IMG/VR virus record: IMGVR_UViG_3300022868_000009
Coordinates: 1-64,000 of that record
Reading direction: 5' to 3' (one strand)
Length of the DNA: 64,000 bases
The translations under genes were made by a program, and so were the position numbers. This document shows, one piece after another, positions 1 through 55,393 of this stretch. Under the pieces are notes generated by a model. That model made no database searches. It was given only the letters and a program-made list of their open reading frames with translations, and was not told where the DNA came from. The first letter of the stretch is position 1; each line of letters starts with the position of its first letter.

Positions 1-236
1 AATTCTTCAGGTAATTTAGGTAATTCAGTTAATTGGTTATAATAACAATATAATCTTTTTAATCCTTTAGGTAATTCAGGTAATTTAGTTAATTGGTTAT
101 TACCACAATATAATCCTTCTAACCCTTTAGGTAATTCAGGTAATTTTTTTAAGAAAAAACCATCTAAATCTAATATTTTACCATCATCATAATCTTTAAT
201 TAATTTATTTTCATTGTATGTCTTTAAATACTTCAT
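1..236 (-). CDS. Leucine-rich repeat protein (bacterial 20-aa LRR, IpaH/SspH/YopM-like), partial; runs off the window start
   Basis: Manual translation from ATG at 236: MKYLKTYNENKLIKDYDDGKILDLDGFFLKKLPELPKGLEGLYCGNNQLTKLPELPKGLKRLYCYYNQLTELPKLPEE; paralog of the LRR gene at 20714-21253. Not in the ORF track. Confidence 0.85.
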   Translation of the reverse strand, partial: MKYLKTYNENKLIKDYDDGKILDLDGFFLKKLPELPKGLEGLYCGNNQLTKLPELPKGLKRLYCYYNQLTELPKLPEE

Positions 237-580
237 TAAATTATATTCATTTTACCAGCTTCTAAAAAAGCATTCATATCTAAATCTTCCAATTCAATAA
301 ACTCTTCAAATGAAAATTCATGAAAAATACCATTAAATCTAACTCTACTTTGATGTGATATTTCATCTTTTGTAGTATTAACAATCATCTTTTTAGGATT
401 AAAATTAACATATTTTGATTTTAAATGCTTGTATCCTATAATATCACTTGGCCAAACATAACCGTTATCAAAAAGTCTTTTTTGAACATATCTAGATTCT
501 TCTTCATTATTAACTCTAACAGCAAAAAAACATAAAATATCTGAACCAATTTCTTCTAAATATGTCTTTAAATATTTCAA
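236..580 (-). CDS. Hypothetical protein, MKYLKTY-family with C-terminal EAGKMNII motif
   Basis: 114-aa ORF (TTG start); its stop overlaps the next ATG (TAATG). Confidence 0.75.
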   Translation of the reverse strand: MKYLKTYLEEIGSDILCFFAVRVNNEEESRYVQKRLFDNGYVWPSDIIGYKHLKSKYVNFNPKKMIVNTTKDEISHQSRVRFNGIFHEFSFEEFIELEDLDMNAFLEAGKMNII

Positions 581-674
581 CTTTGTTTAATATTGTATTT
601 TACTTATATCAACTTATATATTTAATTTTCAAACTTAAATTTTTTAAATTCATATAAAAAGAAAAAGAATTAAT

Positions 675-983
675 ATGTCTACTTCAATTCCACATGGATG
701 GTATACAGATTCAACCGGAATATCTATATCAACTGGAACAACATTTACAAGTACTTACACAGATATTTATGAATCACCACCTACAACACTACAACAATTA
801 ATAGATTATTGTAATGATAGAAAATTAACTGAAAAAGATTTAGAATGGTTAGAATATAACGTACCTTTCACTATTAATATATATGAACAATTACAAAAAA
901 TTGAAAATAAATTAGATAAACCTTTTTCTGCGGTAGTTAAGCAAAAATTAAGAAAAATGAAATTGGATAGAGTTAAAGTTTAA
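675..983 (+). CDS. Hypothetical protein (S/T-rich N-terminus, RKMKLDRV C-terminus)
   Basis: 102-aa ORF with A-rich upstream region, opposite strand to its neighbours. Confidence 0.65.
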   Translation: MSTSIPHGWYTDSTGISISTGTTFTSTYTDIYESPPTTLQQLIDYCNDRKLTEKDLEWLEYNVPFTINIYEQLQKIENKLDKPFSAVVKQKLRKMKLDRVKV

Positions 984-988
984 ATATT

Positions 989-1477
989 TCATAATAACCC
1001 CAATTTTTCTCCTTCTATTTTATGTGCGTATTTTATAATAAATTTATCATAACTTAAATATTTCGCCACGTCATATATTAATTTTATAAAATCTTTTGAG
1101 TATATTTGTCCAGTATAATCTGTATAATCATTATAACTATTTATAATATTATTATAATCTGATTGATTAATTTGATTTTTATGTGTTATTAATTTACTTA
1201 ATGAAAAACCATAACCATGTTCAGCTATTCTAGACATAATTTTAATTTGTTCCAATTTTAATCTATCATCTATACTCCATGTAAATGTTTTAACATCACC
1301 AATACTGGTAATTAATTCATAATAATCTTCGAAAAGTTCTTCTTTTAATTCACGATCATGTATGTACTCTATATCTTGTTTTATGTGTTTAAAATGATGA
1401 TCATTTAAATCGTTTAATAAACCACTCAATTTTACAACTTCAGAATTTCTATCTTCATATGTCTTTAAATATTTCAT
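989..1477 (-). CDS. Hypothetical protein, MKYLKTYE / EGEKLGLL family
   Basis: 162-aa ORF carrying both terminal motifs. Confidence 0.8.
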   Translation of the reverse strand: MKYLKTYEDRNSEVVKLSGLLNDLNDHHFKHIKQDIEYIHDRELKEELFEDYYELITSIGDVKTFTWSIDDRLKLEQIKIMSRIAEHGYGFSLSKLITHKNQINQSDYNNIINSYNDYTDYTGQIYSKDFIKLIYDVAKYLSYDKFIIKYAHKIEGEKLGLL

Positions 1478-1761
1478 TACATTAAACCTAATTTACCACC
1501 CTCAACAATTGATTCAATATCACTAATATGTTCTGGGAATTTATAATTAAAATCATAATCATAATAATCTAAATTAATAAAATGAGATATGTTATAACCT
1601 AAAGATTTAACTGTCTCTTGTGCTGTACTTAGACTAAAATCATCTGAATATTGGTAATGTAATTTTCCGTTTATGTACATTGCTGCTTGATTAAAATCAT
1701 ACATAACAACAAAAATCACATCTTTATTCTCTTTATTTTCATATGTCTTTAAATATTTCAT
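1477..1761 (-). CDS. Hypothetical protein, MKYLKTYE / EGGKLGLM family
   Basis: 94-aa ORF carrying both terminal motifs; TAATG coupling to the next gene. Confidence 0.8.
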   Translation of the reverse strand: MKYLKTYENKENKDVIFVVMYDFNQAAMYINGKLHYQYSDDFSLSTAQETVKSLGYNISHFINLDYYDYDFNYKFPEHISDIESIVEGGKLGLM

Positions 1762-3440: not shown

Positions 3441-3515
3441 TTTTTTATTTTTATATATTAAATTTTAATGTTAGAAATTGGATTTTTTACATAAAGATGT
3501 TATTAATATATATAC

Positions 3516-3565: not shown

Positions 3566-5329
3566 TTAAATAAGTACTCCATTTGTGTCTGTAACCTGTA
3601 TTTCCATGAATTGTTTCCAAGGAAAAAAGCCTATGTCAGCTATGGCATATCTTGAACGAATTAACATTCTTGGTGCCCAAGTTGCCTCTGAAATTAAACT
3701 AATAGACTGAGCCATTAGATAAGGAATGAAAATCAAACCTGGTTGATCAACTGAATTCTTTCTTCCTAAAAAGACTCTGTTATCGTCCCATCTCATATAA
3801 GGATCTACATAGATAGCTATGTTACCAATATTACCCATTGGGTATAATTGACCATTTGTATTCAATTTACCTGCGTTAACTGGATTGATAGTATAACCTG
3901 CAATATCTTGAATAACTGATGCAACGTTTCCGTTAGTTACTAAATATTGAGCTGGTCCTACTCTACCATCTGTTGCGATAAAGTTTGAAGCATTATTGAT
4001 TTTAGCAATAAGTTTTCTTTGGATTGAATGAGTAGTTTCTCCTCCTGGTGCAGGACCGAATCCTGTAGCACCAATATAAGTGTCTACGTCAAAATCAAAC
4101 TTAGGAGTACCTGTTGAATCAACTGGAGTTGTTGCTGAAGCTCTGTTTTGAGCAGCTAATTCTCTAATCTTAGCAACAATTTGTTTAGAAATTGTTTGTG
4201 TAAGTTCGTTAATTAATACTGACTCAAGTTTCTGAACAATGTCCATACCTGTTGAAGCTTTAATATCTTCAATTTGAGTTCTCTTAAGAGCTGATGTAAT
4301 CTCGATATCACCTACTTGTACTGACTTAGTAAATACGTCAGGACCGATAACACCTGGATATGTGTTTTCATCTACTTCTCTTAACATTGGGTTTTTATCA
4401 TCCCATCCTGCTACGAAACCAGGAATATGATCTTCCATTAATGAAACTAGTTCAATAGATGTTGTACCAGTAAAATCATAATTTGTAGTTGTTAATAATT
4501 CAGCACCTTGTAACAATGTTGTTACTGAATCAGTACTAGAAACATCAAATGTGTTTCTTTTAGCTACAGTTGGATAAGCACCTGAAACAGGAGCACCAAT
4601 TTGTTTAAATGTACGGAACATTGGTTTACCATCTATTCTTGAAAAACCTAAAAATTCTAACCAACCTTGACGACCTTCAGTAACTGTAGGTTCAATCAAA
4701 CTTGTTGTAGCATCGAAAGTTCTGGTTTTATCTGTATCATCATAATATGTGTCAACAGTTGTTGTACCTGATATTGAGAAGAACATTCTTGATGTTAATC
4801 CACCAATTGTTTCAGTTACACTTGCTGTTGCCATATCAGCTGCAAGATCAGCTCTTAACAATGTATGTTGAGCTGCGATGTTAGTGTCTATTTTAAACAC
4901 CAATGGTCTTTCGTCTCTATCAGTACCATCTGCATTATTGTCATATTTAAAATCGACGAATAATAATTCGATACGTGGAGAAGAAGAAGGTTTAACTGCT
5001 AATAGGTCAAGACCAATTGTTTGAGCAGCAATCTTCATTGATACTGGAAGTAAGTTTTGTGCGATATCACCTGATCCATCAACTGATTGTTTCACGCCAC
5101 TGTCAGCACCATTCCATACAGCACCTGGAGTTCCCCATGGTGTTGGAGGAGCAACTGCGCCCATACCATTTAAGTTACCAAGTGTTGAATAAGAAATATT
5201 CTCATTCATTTGGTGCATTTCGGCATATTCTGCCATCCATGTTCTCTTGTCTTCATCTTCTACTCTTAGAGTATCTAGAACAGGAGCCCATTTTTTTAAC
5301 GCTTTTGATTTGTCTACTATAAAATTCAT
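3566..5329 (-). CDS. gp23: Major capsid protein (T4 gp23-like)
   Basis: KKWAPVL N-terminus, AAQTIGLDLLAVKP, FIPY, PRMLIRSRYA C-terminal motif; directly downstream of the protease/scaffold gene. Confidence 0.9.
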   Translation of the reverse strand: MNFIVDKSKALKKWAPVLDTLRVEDEDKRTWMAEYAEMHQMNENISYSTLGNLNGMGAVAPPTPWGTPGAVWNGADSGVKQSVDGSGDIAQNLLPVSMKIAAQTIGLDLLAVKPSSSPRIELLFVDFKYDNNADGTDRDERPLVFKIDTNIAAQHTLLRADLAADMATASVTETIGGLTSRMFFSISGTTTVDTYYDDTDKTRTFDATTSLIEPTVTEGRQGWLEFLGFSRIDGKPMFRTFKQIGAPVSGAYPTVAKRNTFDVSSTDSVTTLLQGAELLTTTNYDFTGTTSIELVSLMEDHIPGFVAGWDDKNPMLREVDENTYPGVIGPDVFTKSVQVGDIEITSALKRTQIEDIKASTGMDIVQKLESVLINELTQTISKQIVAKIRELAAQNRASATTPVDSTGTPKFDFDVDTYIGATGFGPAPGGETTHSIQRKLIAKINNASNFIATDGRVGPAQYLVTNGNVASVIQDIAGYTINPVNAGKLNTNGQLYPMGNIGNIAIYVDPYMRWDDNRVFLGRKNSVDQPGLIFIPYLMAQSISLISEATWAPRMLIRSRYAIADIGFFPWKQFMEIQVTDTNGVLI

Positions 5330-5351
5330 TTTTATAATTCTTTTTTTTTAT

Positions 5352-5359
5352 TATATATT
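5352..5359 (-). promoter_or_regulatory. Putative late promoter AATATATA upstream of the capsid gene
   Basis: The same octamer recurs within about 70 nt upstream of many structural and CTS-bearing genes. Confidence 0.6.
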
Positions 5360-5466: not shown

Positions 5467-7902
5467 TTATATATTTTTAAGTCTGTTATAGAATCTGTCT
5501 AATTGATCTTCTGATAATGTCGTATTATCAACTAGTTGGTTCTTTTGTAGAACTTGTTTAGATTCTTTAATTAATGAATAGTTTTCCATTTTTCTACTAT
5601 TCCAAAAAGCTTCCATTTTTGCAGGAGTATCTAAATTAGGATACAATTTAGCAGTTAATAGTATGCTTTTCTTTTGGTCATTTTCTAGACCTTCATATAT
5701 TGGTTGTAAATCACTAGGGATATTTTCTACCAATACATCTTCAAAAGTTTTCTTAACACTTAGAGCATCAGTCATAGCTTTAAGGACTTGATTTTCTGAA
5801 TAATACGTGCTTTCGTTTAATGCAAGTTTTACTTTTTCTCTATCTTCGTCAGTTAAAGAATGATAAGATTTTTTATTTCTCTCTGTTAAGAATTGTAAAA
5901 AATGAGGCTCGCTATTTGCAGCTACTTTACGTTTTTTAGTTTCAGTAATAAGTTTGCCAATTTGAGATTTCAATGAATCTTCATTTTCTAATATTTTATC
6001 ACCAATAATGATGATTTTACTTTCGTGTATTTGTAATTCTTCTTGATTGTCTGTTAATTTTAAAAGTACCATACCATCGTTAGGCATGTAAGCCATAACT
6101 TCACCTGGTCTATCATTAAATGTTGCAGTCATTCCAGGAACAATTTGATCACTAACTACTTCTTGTCCTTGTACACTCACAGGTGCAACACCTATACTAG
6201 TATCAACTACTGGTGGTTGTGCTTGTACATCAATTTGAGTCTGTGCTTGAACTGGTTGTCCAAATTCATCAACTTCAGCTTGAGCTTGAGCATCTTGTTG
6301 AACAAATTCTTGTCCTTGTTGAGCTTGAGCTTGAACATCTTGTACTTGTGCATCAGCGTCTAATTGTATTGGACTTTGAATTGCATCAGTTGTTTGTGCT
6401 TGAGTTTGATTTTGATTTTGAACAAAATCAGTATCAGTATCATTATCATAAAATCTTTCTACATTTTGAACTTTCATATTAGGCATTTGAGCACCTTGAT
6501 TTTCGTTCAGTTCACCACTATTTAAATGTTCAACAGTTTGGTCTAAAGATTCTGCAAGATAATTTTGATATGCTTGAGTATCAGCAACATTTTCTGCAAT
6601 ATATTCACTATAAGCGATATTGTTATCTACATGTTCTGCAATATATTCACTATAAGCGATATTGTTATCTACATGTTCTGCTACATACTCAGTATAAGCG
6701 ATATTGTTATCTACATGTTCTGCAATATATTCTGCATATTCAATATTGTTATCTACATGTTCTGCAATATATTCTGCATAAGCAATATTTTTATCAAGAT
6801 TTTCTGCTACATATTCTGAATAGTCGATAGATTTTTCAATTGATTCAGCTAAATAATCTGAAAATTGAATATTCTTATCAACGTTCTCAGCGATATACTC
6901 AGAAAAGTCGATATTTTTGTCTAATGTTTCAGCGATGTATTCACTGTAATCAATAGTTTTGTCTAATTCTTCAGCAATGTATTCTGAATAGTTGATAGAC
7001 TTTTCTAATTCTTCTGCTAAATAGTCATTGTGTTTAACAAGACCTTCTGTTTTAGCTTTCAATGTTGAGTTTTCATTAACTACATGTTGAATCTGATCAG
7101 CTAAATAATCTAAATAGCCTGTTACAGAAATTTGTTGTTCGTTTAAATTTTCTAGAAGTTCAGCCATTTTCATCATTCTCTCAGGTTCTACTCCACCTTT
7201 GGCATTTTCTTCAAAGAAACGTTGAACTGATTCAATTTGTTCAGTTAAATAATTTGAATACTCAATCATTTGATTTTTTGTTACAAATTCGTTGTTGTTA
7301 TTCATTTCTAAGAAATCATTAAATTTTGACGAATCTGATAAGTCATAAATACGAAAGTTTGAACTTTCATTAAAACCTAAAGACTCGTTGAGTGATTTTA
7401 ATTCCATTTTTGCAGAACTAAAACCTGGATCTGCAACGGCATCATATGTAAAAAGTTTCTTTATAGCCACCGTACCATTACTTTCAGTAATACCAGCCGC
7501 TCTAGAGCTAACAAAAATAGGGCAATTGTCATCGACTAATGCTTTAGCCTCTTTGCCCCAATGTGTATTAAGTAACCTAATTGTACCTTCTACTCTATTC
7601 GCTTGTGGATTATGAAAAATTGATTCCAATGTATGTGAAACTCTTGCAAGTGATGTATCGAACACGTCAGGATGATCGAATTCACCATATATGACACCTA
7701 AGTTTTTTTTACGTTCATTAAGTTCGCCTAAATGCGGTAAAAACTTATCAGAAGTATAAATTCTTTCATTACGATTAACTACATCAAATTCGGTAAAAAT
7801 ACCTCCTAAAATATATTCTTTCTTTTGAGAACTTTGCTCCTGAATGAGTTTTAAACCATCAGTCGAATTTTCAATGATCAAAACCGGTTTGTTTCCATTC
7901 AT
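5467..7902 (-). CDS. gp21: Prohead core protease (gp21-like) fused to a scaffold/core domain
   Basis: N-terminal GEFDHPD and FVSSRAAG catalytic motifs, YDAVADPGFSSA; followed by acidic 14-aa repeats, a Q-rich linker and a helical C-terminus. Confidence 0.9.
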   Translation of the reverse strand: MNGNKPVLIIENSTDGLKLIQEQSSQKKEYILGGIFTEFDVVNRNERIYTSDKFLPHLGELNERKKNLGVIYGEFDHPDVFDTSLARVSHTLESIFHNPQANRVEGTIRLLNTHWGKEAKALVDDNCPIFVSSRAAGITESNGTVAIKKLFTYDAVADPGFSSAKMELKSLNESLGFNESSNFRIYDLSDSSKFNDFLEMNNNNEFVTKNQMIEYSNYLTEQIESVQRFFEENAKGGVEPERMMKMAELLENLNEQQISVTGYLDYLADQIQHVVNENSTLKAKTEGLVKHNDYLAEELEKSINYSEYIAEELDKTIDYSEYIAETLDKNIDFSEYIAENVDKNIQFSDYLAESIEKSIDYSEYVAENLDKNIAYAEYIAEHVDNNIEYAEYIAEHVDNNIAYTEYVAEHVDNNIAYSEYIAEHVDNNIAYSEYIAENVADTQAYQNYLAESLDQTVEHLNSGELNENQGAQMPNMKVQNVERFYDNDTDTDFVQNQNQTQAQTTDAIQSPIQLDADAQVQDVQAQAQQGQEFVQQDAQAQAEVDEFGQPVQAQTQIDVQAQPPVVDTSIGVAPVSVQGQEVVSDQIVPGMTATFNDRPGEVMAYMPNDGMVLLKLTDNQEELQIHESKIIIIGDKILENEDSLKSQIGKLITETKKRKVAANSEPHFLQFLTERNKKSYHSLTDEDREKVKLALNESTYYSENQVLKAMTDALSVKKTFEDVLVENIPSDLQPIYEGLENDQKKSILLTAKLYPNLDTPAKMEAFWNSRKMENYSLIKESKQVLQKNQLVDNTTLSEDQLDRFYNRLKNI
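6541..7032 (-). repeat. About 12 tandem 42-bp (14-aa) repeats, consensus EYIAEHVDNNIAYS
   Basis: Visible directly in protein and DNA (e.g. gcaatatattcactataagcgatattgttatctacatgttct repeated). Confidence 0.9.
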
Positions 7903-7921
7903 AAGATTTTTCTTTTTTTAC

Positions 7922-12960: not shown

Positions 12961-13101
12961 ATGATTAAAGAAATAGGAGAAATGAAAGTTGCTAATATGT
13001 TAGCAAGTAAATTTTTAAAAGATTTTAATCCAGTAATTGATGAATATATAGTTCAATATATCGGAGCGGAAACAGAAGGTGAAAAAATGGGATTAATGTA
13101 A
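12961..13101 (+). CDS. 46-aa protein with C-terminal EGEKMGLM motif
   Basis: Manual translation MIKEIGEMKVANMLASKFLKDFNPVIDEYIVQYIGAETEGEKMGLM*; TAATG overlap with the next gene; below the ORF-track cutoff. Confidence 0.6.
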   Translation: MIKEIGEMKVANMLASKFLKDFNPVIDEYIVQYIGAETEGEKMGLM

Positions 13102-13586
13102 TGAAAAATCTAAAAACTTTTGAATCATATATAATAGACAAATATAAAGAACGGGGAGAAAATAGTGAAAAAGAACGTGAAATTCATGGAGAAATACAAA
13201 AACTTCAAAACAAAATCTACATTTTACAAAAAAAAGAAAGTGAATATGTTAGAAAAAATGATAAATCTAATTTTTTTTTAAATGAAGAATATTTTAAATT
13301 AAAAAATATCTTACCATTCGAAGATAATGGTCGATTTTTAATTTTCACATTCGATAAACTTTGTACAATAGAAAATAAATCATACCAAGATTTAAGAATA
13401 AAGAAAAACAACACAAAACGTCTTTCTAATTTTAGTTTAGGTATTTCTTCAAATAAAAGATCTGATACTCATGACCCAAGTACAGTTGTAACAGATTTCA
13501 AAGTTCAAAAACAATACAAAATATTAGATTGGATACATGTAAATTATCCAGAATATTTTCAAGCAAATAAATTAGGACTGTTATGA
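13101..13586 (+). CDS. Hypothetical protein, MKNLKTFE / QANKLGLL family
   Basis: 161-aa ORF carrying both terminal motifs. Confidence 0.8.
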   Translation: MKNLKTFESYIIDKYKERGENSEKEREIHGEIQKLQNKIYILQKKESEYVRKNDKSNFFLNEEYFKLKNILPFEDNGRFLIFTFDKLCTIENKSYQDLRIKKNNTKRLSNFSLGISSNKRSDTHDPSTVVTDFKVQKQYKILDWIHVNYPEYFQANKLGLL

Positions 13587-14086
13587 AATATTTAATAACA
13601 TATAATGAATTAACAGGTTCAGCTAGTTATCCATACGAATTAGTTAAAACAAAAAATATAATCTTAGATGATGATGAAACAGTAACAATGATAACATATA
13701 AATTTAAATCTAAAGGTGGTAATATATATACAAATATCCTTCAATTTAAAGGAGATGATAATCATATGTTTTCTGTAAATTTTCAAGATGAAGATAGTTA
13801 TTTTAAAGAACTTGATAAAGATGGTATTTATGATATTAATTATTTAAATACAAATAAAGGTGATGCTGTCATGATTATTTCTACTGTTTGTAATATTATT
13901 CAAGATTATTATGAAAAACATAAAGATCATCTATATTTATTTGGGTTTACTGTAACAGAACCTAAAAGATTAAATATATATAAATATTATCTTCAAAACA
14001 TGTTTCCTGAATGGAAATTAGAAGAAGAAGAAATTAAAGATAATATTCATCGTTTAACTTGTACTAAAGATATAATTTTCGATTAA
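13583..14086 (+). CDS. Hypothetical protein with MKYLITYNE N-terminus
   Basis: 167-aa ORF; weak similarity by eye to the C-terminal part of 28712-29359. Confidence 0.75.
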   Translation: MKYLITYNELTGSASYPYELVKTKNIILDDDETVTMITYKFKSKGGNIYTNILQFKGDDNHMFSVNFQDEDSYFKELDKDGIYDINYLNTNKGDAVMIISTVCNIIQDYYEKHKDHLYLFGFTVTEPKRLNIYKYYLQNMFPEWKLEEEEIKDNIHRLTCTKDIIFD

Positions 14087-14607: not shown

Positions 14608-15156
14608 CTATTTAATATAACCTTTTTTAATCATATCATGTATATATTGTGAATGTTGTATATTTTTATTATTGGCATAACCAATAGTCATATGCATCCC
14701 CCAATAAGGTCTATCTAAATCAACTTCTGATCTAATTTCATCAAAAGTTGTTCTTTGTTCTGGAGTAACTCTTAACCACCAATGTTCACCATCAGTTTTT
14801 AAACCTAAATCTAAATAAACATCAACTTTTTTACCATTCCATTTTTTCTTTACCTCTTGCCATTTAGCCTCTTTTTGAACTTCAGTTCCTTTCCCCATAT
14901 CTTTGTAAGAATCATTTATAAAAGTAACATGAGCATTTCTCATTGGTTTATTTAATTCTAAATTATATCTTTTCTTTACAAACCACGAATAATATTCACA
15001 TAATTCACCCTCTAACATTACCATAGCAACTTTCTTCCAAATAGATTGTTGTTTTTGTTTTTCAGTTTTATCAACTGGATCAAACACAATTGTTCCTTGT
15101 ATTTTAATTTGTTCATTCATGTTTTCATTGATATAATCACTAAATAATGTAATCAT
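14608..15156 (-). CDS. 2H phosphoesterase (gp57B/Acb1-like fold)
   Basis: Two HxT motifs (AHVTF and MHMTI) about 80 aa apart. Confidence 0.7.
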   Translation of the reverse strand: MITLFSDYINENMNEQIKIQGTIVFDPVDKTEKQKQQSIWKKVAMVMLEGELCEYYSWFVKKRYNLELNKPMRNAHVTFINDSYKDMGKGTEVQKEAKWQEVKKKWNGKKVDVYLDLGLKTDGEHWWLRVTPEQRTTFDEIRSEVDLDRPYWGMHMTIGYANNKNIQHSQYIHDMIKKGYIK

Positions 15157-20393: not shown

Positions 20394-20726
20394 ATGATAG
20401 TTTCATTTAATGAATTTCTTAATGAAAATTTTATTTCTGGAAGATTTCTCACCAATATTAATGGCAGAGAAATTGTACTTAAACTTCAAGTAGAATATAT
20501 AAATTTATTAACAAAAGTTTATCTTATAAAAGATAATAAAGTTTATGATAATTTATCTATTAATTTACCTGATTCACGTAAACTTAGAGAAGGTGAATTC
20601 TTTTTAAATCCTGATATTAATTCTAATATTGTAAAAGAATTAACAAAACAAAACTTTATAACAAAACAAAAAACAGAATCGATTGCAGGTGATAAAAAAA
20701 CAACAGCATACAAATTAAATATTTAA
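20394..20726 (+). CDS. Hypothetical protein with CTS-like N-terminus (MIVSFNEFLNE)
   Basis: 110-aa ORF; AATATATA at 20361-20368. Confidence 0.7.
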   Translation: MIVSFNEFLNENFISGRFLTNINGREIVLKLQVEYINLLTKVYLIKDNKVYDNLSINLPDSRKLREGEFFLNPDINSNIVKELTKQNFITKQKTESIAGDKKTTAYKLNI

Positions 20727-21253
20727 AGACATATAGTGAAAATCAATTAATTAATGACCATTTAAGTGATGATGGTAAAACATTAGATTTAACTGGTTTA
20801 AATCTAACTGAATTACCTGAATTACCTAAAGGGTTAAAAACATTATATTGTTATAATAACTATTTAACTGAATTACCTGAATTACCAAAAGGGTTAAAAG
20901 AATTATTTTGTAATAATAACCAATTAACTAAATTACCTGAATTGCCTAAAGGCTTATTAAAATTAGATTGTGAAGATAACAAATTAACTAAATTACCCGA
21001 ATTACCTAAAAATTTAGAAGAGTTATATTGTGAAAATAACCAATTACCTGAATTACCTGAATTACCTAAAGGATTAAAAAGTTTATATTGTAATCATAAC
21101 CAATTAACTAAATTACCTGAATTACCAAAAGGGTTAGAATATTTATTTTGTAATTATAATGAATTACCTTATGATGATTTAGATGGTTATTGGGAATGGT
21201 TTTGGAAAGAAAACCCAGACCTTCATAATGCAAATAAAATGGGATTATATTAA
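20714..21253 (+). CDS. LRR protein (about 8 x 20-aa LPELPKGL repeats) with IKYLKTYSE start and NANKMGLY end
   Basis: The frame of ORF 20942-21253 is open back to 20696; at 20714 ATT AAA TAT TTA AAG ACA TAT gives IKYLKTY, matching the paralog at 1-236; implies a non-ATG start (ATT/ATA) or a mutated ATG. Confidence 0.8.
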   Translation: MKYLKTYSENQLINDHLSDDGKTLDLTGLNLTELPELPKGLKTLYCYNNYLTELPELPKGLKELFCNNNQLTKLPELPKGLLKLDCEDNKLTKLPELPKNLEELYCENNQLPELPELPKGLKSLYCNHNQLTKLPELPKGLEYLFCNYNELPYDDLDGYWEWFWKENPDLHNANKMGLY

Positions 21254-22795
21254 ATGAAATATTTAAAAACATACAAATTATTTGAAAACCCTAACCATAT
21301 TTATAAAAATATTAAAGGAGAATGGATTGATTTATCATTCGAAGATGATGATGCAATTCCATTTTTTTATGATATTGAATTAAATACTATATTTTTAGGT
21401 CAATCAAAAATTGATGGTATATACTATATACACCCCGAATTAATACAAATTGTCAATAAACATAGATCACAAAAAGGGTACGCACCATTAAGCATTTATG
21501 ATACAAATCTATTATACTCTGGTAGAATTTGGAAAGGTAGAAAAGTAATATCTTTTTGGTCATATCCAGATAAAGAAATGTTTGACATTATAATAAATAA
21601 ATTAGAAGATAAATCTTCTGTAAGAATATGGGGTAATGATTGGTTAATTGAAGTAGTTATAGGTGATGATAATATATCAATTAAAAATTTACCTTACAAT
21701 TGGAAAGATAACAACGCAATGGAAAAAGGTATAATTAAAATGGTACCTGTTGATGAATATGATAAAAGTGAAAACTTTGATAGAGAAGATCATATTAAAT
21801 CACCATTAAATAAATCTAAAAAACCGACATACTATAAAACATCTAAACACAAACCAAAAAATATCACTAATATTGAATATAAAGGAATGATGAAAAATAT
21901 ATATCAAGAAAGTATATTATCATTTGGAGAATATATTAAAGAAACTCCTGATTATATTTATAATAGAAATACTGAGTGGGAAATGGAATGGTCTGATGAT
22001 GATGCAAGACCTTTTCAATATTTAACTAATGATCTTTTTTCCGGTGAAAAAAGTGGTGAATTTCATTTAGGTAATTATGGCGACAATCATCCAGATATGT
22101 TTCCTTCAGGTGGATTATATTCAGGTAGAATATGGGATGACCCATCAAAACAAATAATATCATTTTGGGATTATCCACCAAATAAAGAAGAATTCAAAAA
22201 AATTATAGATCAATTAGAAAGAAAAACTGGGCATAAGATTTGGAATAAAGATTGGAAAATAGAAGTTTTAGTCGATAAAAACATTAATAGATGGGATATT
22301 GAAGCCGGTGATGATATGACTTCAGATTTAGAATCAATAATAATACCTGTTGTAGATTATACTGGTAGTGAAGACACTCCTAAAGAATTATTAAATATGC
22401 ATTTAAAAGATAAATCTAAACTCAAAGTTCCAACTGGTTTTGGTTCTAAACATAAACATAAATATCAAACAAATCTTGAACCGATTCGTTATAAAAATAT
22501 GATGAAAAATGTATTTACTGAAAATGTAGACACAAAACCAAAAAGAAAGAAGAAAAAAGTAATATACGAAGCAATTATCAATGATATTAAAGGAAATATT
22601 ATATCATATATAACTAATTTTAAAATGACTAAATTAGAAGAAAAGTGGATGACTTGTAATGTAAAAGGATACAAGAAAAAGAAAGTTGAAGGATACAAAA
22701 CTAAAGTTTGGGTTTATTTTGAAGATAAACTTAAATTAAATACAAAATGTTTTAAAAATGGTAAAATAGAATTACTAGTAATAGATGATAAATAA
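21254..22795 (+). CDS. Hypothetical protein with an internal tandem duplication and MKYLKTY N-terminus
   Basis: Two copies of YSGRIW...ISFW.YP..E.F..II..LE......IW..DW.IEV. Confidence 0.8.
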   Translation: MKYLKTYKLFENPNHIYKNIKGEWIDLSFEDDDAIPFFYDIELNTIFLGQSKIDGIYYIHPELIQIVNKHRSQKGYAPLSIYDTNLLYSGRIWKGRKVISFWSYPDKEMFDIIINKLEDKSSVRIWGNDWLIEVVIGDDNISIKNLPYNWKDNNAMEKGIIKMVPVDEYDKSENFDREDHIKSPLNKSKKPTYYKTSKHKPKNITNIEYKGMMKNIYQESILSFGEYIKETPDYIYNRNTEWEMEWSDDDARPFQYLTNDLFSGEKSGEFHLGNYGDNHPDMFPSGGLYSGRIWDDPSKQIISFWDYPPNKEEFKKIIDQLERKTGHKIWNKDWKIEVLVDKNINRWDIEAGDDMTSDLESIIIPVVDYTGSEDTPKELLNMHLKDKSKLKVPTGFGSKHKHKYQTNLEPIRYKNMMKNVFTENVDTKPKRKKKKVIYEAIINDIKGNIISYITNFKMTKLEEKWMTCNVKGYKKKKVEGYKTKVWVYFEDKLKLNTKCFKNGKIELLVIDDK

Positions 22796-23156
22796 ATACG
22801 AAAAATTCATATATGAACGTTTAGGACAGAATGAAGGTGATATTAATATCGTTGGTATTCATGTTAATGATAAAAATCTAGATGTAATACTTGAAGAAAT
22901 ATCAAATTATTTTAACTTGAAAAGCTTTTTAAATGCTGATTTTGTAAGAAAAAGTGCATCTAGAGAATTGTTTTATGTTAATATATATCCAGTCAATAGT
23001 AATTATAATTACTTTTGGAATAGTATAAATGAATATGATAATATCTTTAATGATTTGGATGAACCTAATACATATAAACTAGAAGATTGGTTTGAAAAAT
23101 ACTTAAATGTTACATTAGAAGAATTTGTAGAAGCTAAAAAATTAGGACTATTATAA
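22785..23156 (+). CDS. Hypothetical protein, CTS-like start / EAKKLGLL end
   Basis: 123-aa ORF. Confidence 0.75.
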   Translation: MINKYEKFIYERLGQNEGDINIVGIHVNDKNLDVILEEISNYFNLKSFLNADFVRKSASRELFYVNIYPVNSNYNYFWNSINEYDNIFNDLDEPNTYKLEDWFEKYLNVTLEEFVEAKKLGLL

Positions 23157-35672: not shown

Positions 35673-35921
35673 CTATAAAACTTTATATTTTAAGATATTA
35701 TTTAAACTATTCTTAGGATCTTTTTCTACTACGAATCCGCCTTTCCAATTAGATTTTTCAGCTTGTTTGAATAACTCATCATAAGTACCTTTATCAAGTT
35801 GTAGATGCATTTCTTCTTTTCGTTTAATATGGTCATCTAATTGCTTGAGTAAAATATTCTTTCTTTGTTGAACACCTTCGTTCATTTCGTTAAATTCGTT
35901 AAATTCATCATAACTTTTCAT
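35673..35921 (-). CDS. Hypothetical protein with CTS-like N-terminus (MKSYDEFNE)
   Basis: 82-aa ORF; AATATATA at 35943-35950. Confidence 0.7.
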   Translation of the reverse strand: MKSYDEFNEFNEMNEGVQQRKNILLKQLDDHIKRKEEMHLQLDKGTYDELFKQAEKSNWKGGFVVEKDPKNSLNNILKYKVL

Positions 35922-37932: not shown

Positions 37933-38646
37933 TTACACAATTTCCGATTTTATTGCATTTGGTGGAATATTATCATAAGTATAATATGCTTCAGAATCTT
38001 CGTTAAACTTTGGATCTTTATGTAATTTAATATTATTAATCATCACTTTCATATCTATTTCTAGAATAATATATTCTTCCTTAGAATGAAATTCTTTTTC
38101 TTCTAAGTAATTTTTAGATATTTTTTCATTTCCAAATAAATAAATTCTTTCTGGATGTTGTTCAATAACGTTTTTAGTTTTAGGAACTATACCTTGTTTT
38201 TTAATTTTATCTAAATTTTTTTTATTTGTAACATGATATAATTTTTCTGGTACACCAACTTCAGAATCAAATCTTTTATTTAAATAAACTATGAAATCTT
38301 CATCTTTTTTCCAAACATGTGTTGAAATACTTGTTTTTTTACCATCCATATACTGGTTTGAAATATTATAACCTAAATTATTTACCAAAATCAATAAATC
38401 AGAATAAAATTCTTTTAATCTTTCTCCATAAAAATTAAGTTCAATTCTATCTTTAAGAATATATAATTTGACACTACCTTTTACTTTATGTTTTTTAAGC
38501 AAATCGTCGATTTTTTGAACTGATATATCATAATCAATACTTTTAATAAGACCCTCTTTAATTAAATTATAATTGAAAGACTCTAACATTTTATTATTAA
38601 AGTCATGATGATATCCACAAAATTCAAAATATTTTTTCATATTCAT
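37933..38646 (-). CDS. ADP-ribosyltransferase-fold protein (Tpt1/KptA-like H-motif) with CTS-like start
   Basis: KLYHVT...I.KQGI.PK...RIYLF...ILEI....YTYDNIPPNAI; paralog of 54608-55393. Confidence 0.6.
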   Translation of the reverse strand: MNMKKYFEFCGYHHDFNNKMLESFNYNLIKEGLIKSIDYDISVQKIDDLLKKHKVKGSVKLYILKDRIELNFYGERLKEFYSDLLILVNNLGYNISNQYMDGKKTSISTHVWKKDEDFIVYLNKRFDSEVGVPEKLYHVTNKKNLDKIKKQGIVPKTKNVIEQHPERIYLFGNEKISKNYLEEKEFHSKEEYIILEIDMKVMINNIKLHKDPKFNEDSEAYYTYDNIPPNAIKSEIV

Positions 38647-48565: not shown

Positions 48566-48570
48566 ATTTA

Positions 48571-48816: not shown

Positions 48817-48820
48817 GTTT

Positions 48821-49262: not shown

Positions 49263-49475
49263 TTAGAGTTTGTTTAATCGTTCAATAACACGATTTTCAA
49301 TATCAGGTATCACCAATCTTTCTAAGGTTTTTAATATCTCTTTATCAATTTCTTCAGTAACAGATTCAGAGAATTGTGTTTCCCATTCATTAACAGCATC
49401 ACTACCATAAATTTCTGATAAATCTTGTGCGGTTTCTCTTCCCCAAATAGCTCTTGCGCCTCTCTTTTTTCTCAT
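49263..49475 (-). CDS. 70-aa protein resembling an isolated segment of gp23-type capsid proteins
   Basis: ARAIWGRETAQDLSEIYGSDAVNEWETQFSESVTEEIDKEIL resembles gp23 LKA.W..ELAQDL.A.H..DAE.EL...LS..I..EIDREI. Confidence 0.55.
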   Translation of the reverse strand: MRKKRGARAIWGRETAQDLSEIYGSDAVNEWETQFSESVTEEIDKEILKTLERLVIPDIENRVIERLNKL

Positions 49476-50173
49476 CTTAATAAATTTGATAACATATAAA
49501 ATTGTGGTGCTAACATTTCTTCGGCTTTTTCTTTACCAACAAAACCTGCCCAATCAACTTCTTCTGCTTGTAGATTTTCTTTTGGTATAGTCAAAACACT
49601 AAAATAATTCTTAAATTCTTGTGAATCTAAATATATAACAGTATAATAATAAGTTTTAAATTTACTATTTTTAAATACACCACAAGTTTTAAATTCTTTT
49701 TCTTTTACTTTTTCTAGTGGATAACCAACACCTATTTCTTCTGCAACTTCTCGAATTGCAGCTTGTGGTTTTGTTTCACCTTCTTCTAAATGACCTTTTG
49801 GATAAGAACATGTTTTTTCCCAATTCAAATTAACATCATGTACTAATAACATTTTATTATTATAAATAAACACAATTCCTGCTGAAAATGATTCATTTAA
49901 TTTCTTAAATTGATATTGAAATTCACTTTTAGTAATCTTAAATAAACCATCTGTTTCATCAAAACCACCAAACTCATCCATTTTCTGGACCATCATGTTA
50001 TCAACACCAGGTATCATAGGATCCGTATTCATCATTTCACGAACCTTAAAATTACCTAATTCTTTACCATCTCTCCAAATTCTGATATAATTATCAACAT
50101 TAAGTTGTTCAAATGATATAAATTCATTAATTTCTTCAACATTTTCTTTTAAAAATTTATAGTAATTTTTCAT
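49472..50173 (-). CDS. NUDIX hydrolase with CTS-like N-terminus
   Basis: Nudix box PKGHLEEGETKPQAAIREVAEEIG. Confidence 0.85.
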   Translation of the reverse strand: MKNYYKFLKENVEEINEFISFEQLNVDNYIRIWRDGKELGNFKVREMMNTDPMIPGVDNMMVQKMDEFGGFDETDGLFKITKSEFQYQFKKLNESFSAGIVFIYNNKMLLVHDVNLNWEKTCSYPKGHLEEGETKPQAAIREVAEEIGVGYPLEKVKEKEFKTCGVFKNSKFKTYYYTVIYLDSQEFKNYFSVLTIPKENLQAEEVDWAGFVGKEKAEEMLAPQFYMLSNLLR

Positions 50174-50520
50174 ATTCCTAAATCAATATCGTGTTTTTCT
50201 GGGTTATATGGTTCTACATAATAGTCAAGCCAATTTTCCATTTCTTCATACCTTATTTCTTCAGCTTCTCCTGCGTCTACTTCATCTTCCTCCATTATAT
50301 TATCCACATCTCTCAATCCATACATACCTTCATAATTTTCATATTCTTCTATTGCTAATTGATATGATAATTTTTCAGCATCATCTTTACTTATATCTTT
50401 TTCTAATCTTAATGGTATAGCACCACCAAAACCGCCACTTAAACCAGCAAAAAGTACCCAATCACCATTTCCTGACAAATGAATATTATTTCCTTCAAAC
50501 ATTTTAAATTTTGTTTTCAT
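50170..50520 (-). CDS. Acidic hypothetical protein with CTS-like start (MKTKFKMFE)
   Basis: 116-aa ORF. Confidence 0.65.
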   Translation of the reverse strand: MKTKFKMFEGNNIHLSGNGDWVLFAGLSGGFGGAIPLRLEKDISKDDAEKLSYQLAIEEYENYEGMYGLRDVDNIMEEDEVDAGEAEEIRYEEMENWLDYYVEPYNPEKHDIDLGI

Positions 50521-52376: not shown

Positions 52377-53423
52377 TTACATTATTCCTAATTTCTGTGC
52401 GTTATATATTGATTGTATATTATTAATTATGTTGTTTAATTCTTTATCATCTAAATTTTTAATTTTATTAGAAAAATCTCTAGAAGCAAACCATTTATAA
52501 CATTTGCTTTTTGGTTTTGCAAATTCCACTAAATATTTAAGTCTAGAATAACTTTTCATTTTATATTGCCATAAAATATCATCAAAATGTTCTTTTAGTA
52601 TATCAACATTATCTTTATAAACAACATTAACCCAAAAGAAATCTTCTGGTAATTTAGATTCATTATCCCAATATCTATCAATTTCAAATTCTAAATCATT
52701 CTGGAGTTGTTGGTAATCTTTTTTAGATTCATATTCTTGCGATTGATATTCAATATCATATGTATAAGGTAAATTATTACCAACTAATCTAAAAAAATCA
52801 CCTATACTATTAATATCTTTATCTTTTATATATTTTAAAAGTGCATCATATTCTACTGTGACACTTACACCATTTTGATATTTACCTGTATAAATAAAAT
52901 CATAATAAAATGGTTGTTCATTTGAGATTTCTTTCTCAATTAATATGGATAATGCTTTTTCTTTCACAATAGATAGTGAATATTTAAACGAATCTTTAAT
53001 TTCTTCAAGGTCAAAATTTTCAAAGAAAACTGCAAATTCTCCCTCATCAACATTATTATTTACATAATCAATCTTATTATCAAGATATTTTGCGAAATTT
53101 AAAACTTTTTGTATTTGTTGTGTAGTCATATAATGATGAATATAATTTACCTCATCATCATCAATATAAAATTCATAACCATATGAATTTGCAAATCTTA
53201 ACCATTCAATAACACCTCTTTCAATTTCCAATAAATCTTCAAAATCATCTATTTTAATATCAAATGATAATTCATCTTTTTCAACTTCTAAATAACCGTG
53301 ATTTTCTTGAATATCTAAATAATTTGAGATTTCTTCTGGTTTCTCTTCACCAGACATAATTTTCTCAACTACTTCTTTTAGGATAGAATTTTTAATATCT
53401 TCAAAATATTTAATATATTTCAT
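52377..53423 (-). CDS. Hypothetical acidic protein, MKYIKYFE / NAQKLGIM family
   Basis: 348-aa ORF with both terminal motifs; AATATATA at 53429-53436. Confidence 0.8.
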   Translation of the reverse strand: MKYIKYFEDIKNSILKEVVEKIMSGEEKPEEISNYLDIQENHGYLEVEKDELSFDIKIDDFEDLLEIERGVIEWLRFANSYGYEFYIDDDEVNYIHHYMTTQQIQKVLNFAKYLDNKIDYVNNNVDEGEFAVFFENFDLEEIKDSFKYSLSIVKEKALSILIEKEISNEQPFYYDFIYTGKYQNGVSVTVEYDALLKYIKDKDINSIGDFFRLVGNNLPYTYDIEYQSQEYESKKDYQQLQNDLEFEIDRYWDNESKLPEDFFWVNVVYKDNVDILKEHFDDILWQYKMKSYSRLKYLVEFAKPKSKCYKWFASRDFSNKIKNLDDKELNNIINNIQSIYNAQKLGIM

Positions 53424-53434
53424 CTAATTATATA

Positions 53435-53680
53435 TTAATATTTAATTTTAAAATATAAAATTGTAGATTGTATTAAGATTGCAAATGAATTTGCTATTAT
53501 AAGTGGTAAATCTACGATACATATACCATAAATCAACCATAATAAAATACCAATAACAAACATCAAAACCATTGTTAATGATAAATCATCACTCTTTTTT
53601 GTTTTTATAAGTTTAATTAATTGAGGCAACCCTGCTAAGGTTGTTAAAATTGCTGCTAAAATACCAATTATCATAACCAT
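53435..53680 (-). CDS. SemiSWEET (PQ-loop) sugar transporter
   Basis: GILAAILTTLAGLPQLIK...DLSLTM...G..LWLIYG...LPLIIAN; three TM helices. Confidence 0.85.
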   Translation of the reverse strand: MVMIIGILAAILTTLAGLPQLIKLIKTKKSDDLSLTMVLMFVIGILLWLIYGICIVDLPLIIANSFAILIQSTILYFKIKY

Positions 53681-53681
53681 A

Positions 53682-54611
53682 TTAAATACCTAGATTTTTA
53701 TATATCTCATATGTTGTTTTAATTCCTTCGTCTAATTCTATTTTATATTTCCAACCAATTTCATTTATTTTAGAAACATCTAATATTTTTCTCATTGTTC
53801 CGTTTGGTTTTGTAATATCCCATGTTATATTACCTTTGAATCCAATAACTTTTGATATTTTCTCAGCTAGTTCTTTAATTGTAATATCAGAGCCTGTGCC
53901 AATATTAAGTATTTCATTTTTTTCATAATTATTCATTAAAAATACTAATGATTCTGCTAAGTCTTGTACATGTAAAAATTCTCTTTTAGGTGTTCCATCA
54001 CCCCACAAATTAACATCAGTATTATTTACCTTAGCTTCATGTATTTTTCTTATCATAGCTGCAAAAACATGACTCTTTTCTAAATCATAATTATCAGCAT
54101 CACTACCATATAAATTTGTTGGCATCACTGCAATATATTTTGTTCCATATTGATTATTATAATTCTCTATCATTTTCAGACCGGAAATCTTTGCAACTGC
54201 ATATGGCTCATTTGTTTGTTCTAATTTAGATGTCAATAAATATTCTTCTTTAATAGGTTGTGGACAATTCTTAGGGTATACGCAACTTGAAGCTAAAAAC
54301 AACACCTTTTTAACATCATTTAAATATGAATTATGTATGATATTATTTTGAATCATCATATTTTCATATAAAAATTCTGCTCTTCTTACATTATTATCAT
54401 ATATACCTCCTACTTTTGCAGCACACATAAATACATATTCTGGTTTTTGTTCTTCAAAAAAGATTTTAGTATCATTTTGATTAATTAAATTTAACTCTTT
54501 ACTTGTTCTAGTTATTAAATTAGTATAACCTTGATCTTGTAATGTTTTTAAAACTGAAGAGCCAACTAATCCTGTGTGACCAGCTACATATATTTTATCA
54601 TTTTTATTCAT
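53682..54611 (-). CDS. fcl: GDP-L-fucose synthase
   Basis: AGHTGLVGS, CAAKVGGI, SSCVYPK, EPYAVAK, PTNLYG, WGDGTPKREFLHV. Confidence 0.95.
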   Translation of the reverse strand: MNKNDKIYVAGHTGLVGSSVLKTLQDQGYTNLITRTSKELNLINQNDTKIFFEEQKPEYVFMCAAKVGGIYDNNVRRAEFLYENMMIQNNIIHNSYLNDVKKVLFLASSCVYPKNCPQPIKEEYLLTSKLEQTNEPYAVAKISGLKMIENYNNQYGTKYIAVMPTNLYGSDADNYDLEKSHVFAAMIRKIHEAKVNNTDVNLWGDGTPKREFLHVQDLAESLVFLMNNYEKNEILNIGTGSDITIKELAEKISKVIGFKGNITWDITKPNGTMRKILDVSKINEIGWKYKIELDEGIKTTYEIYKNLGI

Positions 54612-55393
54612 AAATCTTCTTTTACAATTTTTATCTTTTTAGGTGATAGAGAATCATATGTAAAAAAACCAGATAATTCCATTGAATCTACATCAGTGTG
54701 TAATATATTTTTGTTTTTATCTAATTCTATCTCATATAAATCATATTTAAGTTCAATATTTTTATCTAAAAGATCATTTAATTTTAATGATTTTAAAATA
54801 TTTACATAATTGTCTATTTCTGTAAAAACATATATTCTTTCTCGATGATTTATTTTTCTTGAAAATGATTTAGGATATAAACCATTTCTTTTTATTGAGT
54901 TTCTATTTTTTACTGGTGATAAATGATAAACAATATCTGGAATATCAACATCATTTTTATATAAAGAATCATCATATTTAGCATCAAACAAAATAACAAT
55001 TTCTTTATTATTTTTCTTTATTTCAACATCAAAATTATTTATTATTACTTGTTTAACTTTTTGTTTCTTTTTATTGTCGGTTTCTTCTACTAACTTTGTA
55101 GTGAAAAAATTCAACGTATTTTGTTTATTATTTTCTCTTAATATTTTAAAATTAATTGGATAATAACCTAGATTTTCATTATATTTAAAAAACAACTCAT
55201 ACATATCTTCATCCAAAAATGATAAAGGATTATTAATAGTAATCTCATATCTAAATTTATCAAGTATATTTAATTCAATATCAAAACCAATTCCTCTTAA
55301 ATTGATTTCTAGTGATGAATATATATTGTATATGTTATGTGTCGTTATTAAACCTTCTTTTATCAAAGATAAAAATTGTTCATATGTTTTCAT
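54608..55393 (-). CDS. ADP-ribosyltransferase-fold protein with MKTYEQF CTS-like start
   Basis: VYHLSP..N..SI..NGLYPK...RIYVF...YEI...YDSLSPKKI; paralog of 37933-38646. Confidence 0.6.
   Translation of the reverse strand: MKTYEQFLSLIKEGLITTHNIYNIYSSLEINLRGIGFDIELNILDKFRYEITINNPLSFLDEDMYELFFKYNENLGYYPINFKILRENNKQNTLNFFTTKLVEETDNKKKQKVKQVIINNFDVEIKKNNKEIVILFDAKYDDSLYKNDVDIPDIVYHLSPVKNRNSIKRNGLYPKSFSRKINHRERIYVFTEIDNYVNILKSLKLNDLLDKNIELKYDLYEIELDKNKNILHTDVDSMELSGFFTYDSLSPKKIKIVKEDL

Follow-up and report, generated by a model that had tools for sequence, protein, structure and literature searches.

Why should dozens of otherwise unrelated proteins of a single phage begin with almost the same nine residues? 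The question is raised by a 64-kb stretch of DNA, hereafter the window, which constitutes the first part of the linear, 344,634-bp virus record IMGVR_UViG_3300022868_000009 of the IMG/VR collection (25% G+C). A first-pass annotation of the window had listed 17 N-termini of accessory proteins and had likened them to the capsid-targeting sequence (CTS) of phage T4, i.e., the cleavable peptide that brings internal proteins (IPs) into the head. Analysis of the whole record indicates that the shared N-terminal peptide is real and more widespread than had been claimed, since 45 open reading frames (ORFs) carry its principal form (class 1) and about 25 others carry a more T4-like form (class 2). These tags would be T4-type cleavable capsid-targeting propeptides that have undergone massive expansion in one clade of huge phages, a reading that we hold to be about equally likely to be right or wrong. 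The completeness of the record was estimated by CheckV at ~48%, and at the DNA level the record is distantly related to LR756501-4, published “uncultured phage” genomes of 630-735 kb. DNA of the window is also present in salt-lake and marine metagenomes (DNA sequencing runs), and the standard genetic code reads the ORFs of the record without trouble.

The extent of the tag was established by means of a position-specific scoring matrix (PSSM) built from exact class-1 matches and scanned against every ATG-started frame of the record. Forty-five ORFs were found to begin with M-[KR]-[YH]-L-K-[TK]-[YF]-x-E, with a clear score gap below them, and all start at, or a few codons from, the first ATG after a stop; a seven-residue motif scan run earlier had given 33 matches, nearly all of them preceded by an in-frame stop at a distance of a few codons. 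In class 1, [YF]-x-E occupies positions 7-9, or Glu stands at position 8. The class-2 pattern [YF]xx[FY][ILV]xE occurs within the first 18 residues of 21 ORFs, compared with 3.6 expected. A more general rule (hydrophobic residue at position 4, aromatic residue at 7, Glu at 8-10) is obeyed by 51 of the 482 non-overlapping ORFs, compared with 5.2 expected from internal Met positions, and the strict T4 register (aromatic residues at 4 and 7, L/I/V/M at 8, Glu at 10) by six, compared with 0.26 expected. Class 1 supplies Leu at position 4 and Tyr or Phe at position 7, i.e., at the T4 targeting positions, and class-2 tags agree with the T4 CTS at all four positions mapped by mutagenesis (4, 7, 8, and 10). 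The tagged ORFs of the window are listed in Table 1, which includes the ATG-started class-1 copies that fit the pattern M-K-[YHN]-[LI]-[KI]-[TY]-[YF]-x-E and two more with another first codon. All 17 N-termini of the first-pass annotation were located in the sequence where they had been placed, and most of them hold as tags; the four that begin at 35921, 38646, 50520, and 55393 are weak.

Several lines of evidence place the conservation at the level of the peptide. Across the 45 class-1 genes, the DNA upstream has almost no information content; the value rises sharply at the ATG and drops after codon 9. Within the tag, synonymous codons are freely used (TTA, CTT, TTG, and CTA for Leu; AAA and AAG for Lys; ACA, ACT, and ACG for Thr) and residues alternate between Tyr and Phe, Leu and Ile, and also Lys and Arg, while the mean pairwise DNA identity amounts to 67% over codons 2-9 vs 34-40% to either side. 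Since synonymous codons vary and the upstream DNA is unconserved, selection appears to act on the tag peptide itself. A role of the N-terminal tag as a promoter, a leader or a mobile regulatory cassette was ruled out because the upstream DNA is unconserved, and a role as a recombination handle because of the 67% identity and the free synonymous change.

The proteins behind the tag have little in common. After trimming of the termini, all-against-all BLAST and iterated hidden Markov model searches left most of the tagged bodies as singletons or tiny families, and the Pfam domains of the tagged proteins differ (leucine-rich repeat [LRR], NUDIX, DUF6934, PolyA_pol/CCA-adding, RNase H, and DeoC). 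These domains begin 20-100 residues past the tag, with start residues of 46 for the CCA-adding enzyme, 22 for RNase H, 31 for the DeoC aldolase, and 97 for NUDIX. The AlphaFold2 model of a tagged LRR protein has a predicted local distance difference test score (pLDDT) of 92.6 overall and of <50 at residues 1-6, with the first helix starting from residue 9; given this low score over residues 1-6, the tag is predicted to be a free extension ahead of the fold. In the LRR family, the 20-residue repeats (L-T-E-L-P-E-L-P-K-G-L) number ~3 to 9 across copies and relatives.

Head genes of the T4 type form a module in the window as well, namely a major capsid protein, a prohead protease fused to a scaffold, and a portal protein (Table 1), none of which carries a tag. 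The match of the protease domain to Pfam S77 is below the cut-off; a tblastn search with the protease matched 704 phage records that bear the annotation prohead core scaffold or protease, with Tenacibaculum phage PTm1 at the top (1e-17). In comparison with T4 gp21 (NC_000866), the motifs V-V-N-R-N, G-E-x-x-H-P, and V-S-S-R correspond, and G-E-F-D-H-P and V-S-S-R-A-A-G pair, in order, with T4 G-E-L-N-H-P and V-S-S-R-G-L-G. We take the His and Ser of these aligned motifs to be the catalytic residues of T4 gp21. The scaffold part contains ~13 tandem repeats of 13 residues each, based on Y-[SA]-E-Y-[ILV]-A-E. The protease-scaffold fusion is kept at 69 related loci with 7-15 repeats, in which the residue after the repeat Glu is Asn in 47%.

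The same short motif around a Glu recurs in the head proteins and in the tags. The N-terminal region of the capsid protein bears [LMIV]-N-E-N in 61 of 62 relatives, the sole exception having L-T-E-N, ~60 residues ahead of the first block that can be aligned with mature T4 gp23. The scaffold has an L-N-E-N (or I-T-E-N) site ~30 residues from its C-terminus, and the protease's own N-terminus reads L-I-I-E-N at residues 8-12, V-L-I-I-E pairing with L-L-I-E of T4. When the head-protein motif, written as [ILVMFY]-[NTA]-E-[NSHT], was scanned over all ORFs, its Glu fell at residue 9 in 11 of them (0.7 expected), and a tail extended over residues 10-13. The residue that follows [YF]-x-E of the tag is Asn or Ser in 57% vs 14% in the background. 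The tags match the phage's own presumed protease site, i.e., hydrophobic-N-E-N cut between Glu and the last Asn. Furthermore, the class-2 tag resembles both one scaffold repeat and the T4 CTS, which suggests targeting by scaffold mimicry.

Other genes around and beyond the head module were recorded. Large homing endonucleases (DUF7487 / phrog_3339, 1e-125) at 1788-3440(-) and 8010-9752(+) flank the capsid-protein, protease, and portal genes, and homing endonucleases are also found at 95.6 kb and 183.7 kb of the genome; in relatives, the DUF7487 / phrog_3339 family holds the site downstream of the capsid gene. A 178-residue ORF at 147.6-148.1 kb of the genome (-) resembles, in its first 45 residues, the N-terminal region of the capsid protein (K-W-K-P-V-L … W-M-S-I-Y-A-E). 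It adjoins a putative RFC-like clamp loader and a putative IF3-like ORF, both named from sequence reading.

The closest known system is that of T4, whose protease cuts after L/I-x-Glu and whose CTS is the sole feature common to diverse packaged defence proteins (PMC9026906, PMC3012670). In the CTS of IPIII, targeting depends on residues 4 and 7, and processing on residues 8 and 10 (PMC9026906). As in IPI, IPII, and IPIII, an N-terminal peptide of ~10 residues precedes unrelated, fast-evolving proteins, is hydrophobic or aromatic at positions 4 and 7 and ends in hydrophobic-x-Glu, and a gp21-family protease and a scaffold core are encoded here too; the T4 CTS MKTYQEFIAE and the class-2 tag M-K-K-Y-G-E-F-I-N-E are alike at seven of ten residues. 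The T4 head-core proteins gp21, gp22, gp24, gp67, and gp68 likewise have a short N-terminal stretch that ends in L/I-x-Glu, comparable to V-L-I-I-E and the following Asn in the protease of the record; the N-termini of T4 core proteins read from NC_000866 are M-L-K-E-Q-L-I-A-E, M-N-E-P-Q-L-L-I-E, and M-A-K-I-N-E-L-L-R-E. Unlike in T4, the main form here is MK[YH]LKT[YF]NE, with nine residues, Tyr or Phe three residues before the presumed cut and Asn after it, and there are 45-76 carriers in half a genome vs a handful in T4. The carriers also differ from the T4 IPs in that they include enzymes of 200-500 residues and that many bear a second, C-terminal tag.

More distant parallels can be drawn with other viruses and with loading systems of bacteria. 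The propeptides of the phiKZ type are long and dissimilar, with an S/A/G-x-E motif. In the giant phages phiKZ, 201phi2-1, and SPN3US, many head proteins are cut after Glu by a diverged protease of the gp21 type, and many proteins are ejected (PMC9026906, PMC5694885); here, in contrast, one short leader is reused, and the phage belongs to a different clade with T4-like capsid protein and portal. The herpesvirus assemblin-scaffold (UL26 type) is also a protease-scaffold fusion, comparable to the one described here with its protease-like site ~30 residues from the scaffold C-terminus. The herpesvirus maturation site likewise lies near the scaffold C-terminus, but apart from the protease fold that gp21 is reported to share, no relation in sequence exists, and herpesviruses are without cargo leader peptides. 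Finally, in the cargo-loading peptides of encapsulins and the N-terminal signals of Photorhabdus virulence cassettes and extracellular contractile injection systems, a short terminal peptide is enough to load diverse cargo into a phage-related shell or tube; these signals offer a functional analogy for both tags, without sequence similarity.

By its distribution, the tag appears to be confined to phages, and among these to a single clade. A degenerate 27-nt tag pattern was found in 75 stretches of IMG/VR, all of them AT-rich save one contig of 43% G+C without the tag, and in almost all of these stretches the tag lies at or near an ORF start. Five IMG/VR contigs with the tag pattern also hold the capsid gene of this clade; a search for Pfam Gp23 in five tag-bearing contigs, all of which are fragments, gave no match. 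Completeness estimates imply genomes of ~300-700 kb. In 596 Gb of prokaryote genomes, the same pattern was found in 10 stretches, three of which are AT-rich phage-like contigs of metagenome-assembled genomes, the rest being single matches. A 21-nt class-1 pattern had 25 matches in the record, 11 in LR756504 and none in the 735-kb LR756501, with no match of the reversed-pattern controls. The protease of LR756501 is nevertheless 76% identical to that of the record, and in a 200-kb sample of this genome ~15-20 of 241 ORFs have class-2-type F-[IV]-N-E N-termini (e.g., …D-E-F-I-N-E-S and …N-N-F-V-N-E-A). Because LR756501 has class-2 N-termini without class 1, the T4-like form appears to be clade-wide and MKYLKTYNE lineage-specific: the [YF]xx[FY][ILV]-N-E form would be ancestral and MK[YH]LKT[YF]NE a derivative expanded in the AT-rich lineage.

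We know of no cultured member of this clade. When the tag DNA was compared with cultured phages by short-query BLAST, only chance-level matches were obtained, and a string search for the tag peptides yielded nothing relevant, no description of them being found in the literature searched. Tenacibaculum phage PTm1, the only cultured phage checked with the 21-nt class-1 pattern, has a fused protease-scaffold gene that adjoins its capsid gene, and I-N-E-N at the same place of its capsid protein. As a cultured bridge to proteomics it was dropped, because the class-1 pattern had no match in it (class 2 was not sought) and because its scaffold repeats differ from those of the record.

The first-pass annotation overlooked a second, C-terminal tag that is equally striking. 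Sixty-one ORFs of the record end with [DE]-[LI]-x-x-hydrophobic-hydrophobic-E-[AGS]-x-K-[LM]-G-L-[LIMF], and the final tetrapeptide occurs 98 times in the proteome, 61 of them at the extreme C-terminus. The Gly, Leu, and small-residue codons vary freely, which indicates peptide-level selection here as well. Both tags are found on 17 ORFs, compared with about five expected (p = 5e-7). Forty-four carriers of the C-terminal tag lie at 300-344 kb, mostly as genes of ~100 residues in tandem arrays. Several clusters with the C-terminal tag only align as one diverged family, the model of which has a pLDDT of 84; its fold found no match in PDB (Foldseek, VIA), and weak matches in BFVD were to uncharacterized phage proteins. 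In a sister lineage of this clade the C-terminus is K-[YF]-N-[IL], without a conserved Glu, and the two endings are never found at one locus. The C-terminal tag has a hydrophobic residue before its Glu, the latter being present in 34 of 61 copies, and is unlike the head-protein site motif. Among T4 proteins, Alt offers a precedent, as a packaged enzyme whose two termini are both trimmed (PMC9026906).

Three other roles of the C-terminal tag were considered and rejected. A DNA-level coupling signal or ribosome-binding site was ruled out by the free codon variation and by the variable spacing, since the distance from the stop to the next start ranges from -4 to >1000 nt and only about a third of the stops abut the next start. 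A mimic of the scaffold tail, suggested by visual inspection, was rejected as well: a PSSM of 45 scaffold tails scored >6 bits in 2 of 57 Y-type and in none of 105 G-type endings. As for a sliding-clamp-binding motif, the last piece of the family-B DNA polymerase (128636, minus strand) ends with …F-E-N-F-D-D-W-G-F and not with K-[LM]-G-L-L; we infer that this ORF is the C-terminal piece of the polymerase. The polymerase gene is fragmented over 128.6-132.4 kb of the genome, with an intein-like insert after Y-G-D-T-D-S and endonuclease genes between the pieces.

Tagged genes also tend to share an upstream element. The frequency of an (A)ATATATA(A) element is highest 10-30 nt ahead of start codons (e.g., at 5330-5360, 7903-7935, and 3441-3465), and the element sits upstream of the capsid-protein, protease-scaffold, and portal genes. 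The correlation of the tag with the AATATATA element, which the first-pass annotation had predicted, is borne out: among genes with an upstream spacer of at least 40 nt, to which this test was limited, the element precedes 20 of 28 tagged genes vs 76 of 219 others (p = 3e-4). It precedes 3 of 17 genes that carry the C-terminal tag only. Ten sampled large ORFs with the element are mostly without family match, apart from homing endonucleases and ClpB. Ten sampled without it include a ligase, a RecA-like protein, NAPRTase, and sugar-nucleotide enzymes; the large terminase is nevertheless in this group too. These observations fit a candidate late-type promoter, to be compared with TATAAATA of T4. 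The ClpB in question, at 151411-153567(+) of the genome, is devoid of an N-domain and is very close to bacterial ClpB (E = 8e-246).

In the mechanism that we propose, a short unstructured leader, in which position 4 is hydrophobic, position 7 is aromatic and hydrophobic-x-Glu follows, is carried by many unrelated proteins and would bring them into a prohead core built of the protease-scaffold protein. The gp21-family protease would then cut the leader after its Glu, as well as the capsid-protein propeptide and the scaffold repeats, and the mature carriers would remain in the head and could enter the host together with the DNA. The CTS interpretation is supported by the modular signal at the peptide level, by the head genes of T4 type, and by the Glu motif that tags and head proteins have in common. 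The “arsenal” of injected proteins that the first-pass annotation had attached to it fares less well, as the carriers include RNase H, DeoC aldolase, and a CCA-adding enzyme, all of them ordinary enzymes of nucleic acids or nucleotides, and this also weighs against a packaging role.

Other observations point in the same unfavorable direction. The tagged share, 9-16% of all ORFs, is large, and to our knowledge several-fold above that of T4 or phiKZ-like phages, by our estimate. The Glu of class 1 stands at residue 8 or 9, and the third residue before the presumed cut is Tyr, Phe, or Thr vs Leu or Ile in T4. Tagged proteins showed no depletion of internal protease-like sites, and synteny of tagged genes with the head module is absent in relatives, where homing endonucleases are found instead. 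The C-terminal tag lies outside the classical CTS model, with T4 Alt as the sole precedent, and PTm1 lacks the class-1 pattern. Among the sequencing runs matched to the window, none of those holding this phage was an RNA run. Neutral with regard to binding is a complex prediction of the protease domain with a tagged protein of 100 residues, run without controls, which scored 0.00.

Other explanations were weighed against the same body of evidence. The tags could be docking peptides for another phage assembly or hub (a different compartment of the virion, a factory for replication or translation, or a chaperone, for instance ClpB), i.e., two address labels without cleavage by the head protease. 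The excess of doubly tagged ORFs favors such a role, as does the lineage-specific C-terminal tag (K[LM]GLL vs K[YF]N[IL]), which would be expected of a co-evolving phage receptor; many carriers are moreover nucleic-acid or nucleotide enzymes, and ClpB is encoded behind the same promoter-like element as the tagged genes. No receptor was identified, however, and docking leaves unexplained both the Glu motif common to tag, capsid protein, and scaffold and the agreement of class 2 with the four mapped positions of the T4 CTS, so that we regard it as unlikely. It is quite improbable that the tags are N- and C-terminal degrons that limit the lifetime of accessory proteins through an AAA+ protease of host or phage. 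Although both signals are short and terminal, the N-terminal one is disordered in the AlphaFold2 model and the C-terminal one, with a basic residue followed by a hydrophobic tail, is loosely like C-terminal ClpX signals, ClpP was not found in the record and the Clp-family gene of the phage encodes ClpB, which feeds no protease. A C-terminal tag that differs between sister lineages would be odd for a signal read by the host, and the head-protease motif in the tags would again be left without explanation.

The arrangement of the genes raises another possibility, namely that the conserved ends are inherited remnants of one much-duplicated family or result from the shuffling of cassettes by recombination at gene ends. 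Tagged genes do occur in tandem arrays, 13 genes with the N-terminal tag come directly after a gene that ends with the C-terminal tag, and several clusters with the C-terminal tag only form one diverged family. This account is nonetheless very improbable, as clearly different folds (LRR, RNase H, NUDIX, DeoC, PolyA_pol) carry tags and as the pairwise DNA identity, with free synonymous change, is too low for recombination handles. Finally, the first codons could serve expression, either as an A/T-rich start or through a nascent peptide that aids translation in a host without Shine-Dalgarno pairing. The tag codons are indeed rich in A and T, and well-expressed genes often have Lys at codon 2. 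The amino-acid classes (Y/F, L/I, K/R) are kept while third codon positions vary, however, the capsid-protein, protease-scaffold, and portal genes do without the tag, and the pattern is almost absent from the prokaryote genomes searched, including AT-rich ones. Even though bS21, a ribosomal protein associated with late translation (PMC9723584), is encoded by relatives in the clade, a role in expression is thus extremely improbable.

If the N-terminal tags are packaging signals, the DNA of these uncultured huge phages would be accompanied into the host by dozens of finished proteins (among them LRR proteins, enzymes of RNA repair, nucleotide enzymes, and many orphans), the gene content of huge phages would have to be read differently, and the virion cargo would be predictable from sequence alone, clade-wide. 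A short tag for the loading of foreign proteins into large capsids would also become available. The tie between the T4 CTS and the scaffold repeat suggests, in addition, that the CTS works by scaffold mimicry. A bolder and rather doubtful extension is a two-ended address code in one clade of huge phages, probably of Bacteroidota, in which the N-terminal label would be a cleavable mimic of the scaffold repeat and the C-terminal label a lineage-specific one, both marking >80 hypervariable proteins (~17% of the record's genes) as capsid cargo. This would amount to by far the largest protein payload known for any phage. The C-terminal tag and its lineage-specific switch constitute a separate problem.

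Table 1. Tagged ORFs and head genes of the window (class 1 and class 2 refer to the N-terminal tag; the position of the first codon follows the class).
Coordinates	Strand	Feature	N-terminal tag	C-terminal tag	Match
3..236	(-)	LRR protein, LPX-type 20-residue repeats; ORF exceeds window start	class 1, ATG at 236, MKYLKTYNEN		LRR_4 6e-12
236..580	(-)	114-residue ORF	class 1, TTG at 580, tag-like KYLKTYLEE	degenerate, EAGKMNII	
989..1477	(-)	162-residue orphan	class 1, ATG at 1477, MKYLKTYED	EGEKLGLL	
1477..1761	(-)	94-residue protein	class 1, ATG at 1761, MKYLKTYEN	EGGKLGLM	
3566..5329	(-)	major capsid protein, T4 gp23 family; hydrophobic-N-E-N at residues 41-44			Pfam Gp23 6e-27
5467..7902	(-)	prohead protease (T4 gp21 family, residues 1 to ~175) fused to scaffold, 811 residues			
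9798..11513	(-)	portal protein, T4 gp20 family			Portal_T4 5e-67
12961..13101	(+)	46-residue ORF, C-terminal tag only		EGEKMGLM	
13101..13586	(+)	161-residue protein	class 1, ATG at 13101, MKNLKTFES	QANKLGLL	
13583..14086	(+)	167-residue DUF6934 protein	class 1, ATG at 13583, MKYLITYNE		DUF6934 4e-7
14608..15156	(-)	182-residue protein, two H-x-T motifs as in 2H phosphoesterases	class 2, 15156, …FSDYINEN		phrog_12204
20394..20726	(+)	110-residue protein	class 2, 20394, …FNEFLNEN		
20714..21253	(+)	LRR protein, same family as 3..236	class 1, ATT (not ATG) at 20714	NANKMGLY	
21254..22795	(+)	513-residue protein; body is an internal duplication	class 1, ATG at 21254, MKYLKTYKLFEN		no family match
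22785..23156	(+)	123-residue protein	class 2, 22785, …YEKFIYE	EAKKLGLL	
35673..35921	(-)	82-residue ORF	weak, MKSYDEFNEFNE		
37933..38646	(-)	237-residue protein	loosely tag-like		weak, Tpt1/KptA-like 7e-4, below cut-off
49472..50173	(-)	NUDIX protein, domain from residue 97	class 2, 50173, strict T4 register Y4/F7/L8/E10		NUDIX 6e-12
50170..50520	(-)	116-residue ORF	weak, MKTKFKMFE; F-K-x-F-E variant common in sister lineage		
52377..53423	(-)	348-residue protein	class 1 variant, ATG at 53423, MKYIKYFED	NAQKLGIM	
54608..55393	(-)	261-residue paralogue of 37933..38646	MKTYEQF start without Glu at processing position; membership doubtful		

The NUDIX protein is recognized by Pfam, the putative 2H phosphoesterase has the two H-x-T motifs of such enzymes, and the two LRR proteins belong to one family. 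Of the two supposed ADP-ribosyltransferases, one has a weak match to Tpt1/KptA and the other was judged a paralogue from common motifs by eye. The orphan at 989..1477 returned only itself in a word search of 5.8 billion proteins, and an Atlas search gave unnamed viral clusters as its sole result.

Elsewhere in the window, ORF runs with signal-peptide or lipoprotein-like N-termini, as judged by reading, are found on the minus strand at 29938-33768 and 47939-49198 (two of these ORFs were checked and had no family match). A Ser/Thr protein kinase (23157-24824(-)), a Dam-type adenine methyltransferase (27788-28702(-)), an NAD-dependent DNA ligase (46521-47771(-)), and a CNNM/CBS membrane protein (17562-18569(+)) are encoded as well. 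Toward the end of the window, a GDP-mannose 4,6-dehydratase and an epimerase of the GDP-sugar pathway (53682-56449) have a Tpt1/KptA-like ORF inserted between them, and further sugar-nucleotide genes extend up to 63.5 kb.

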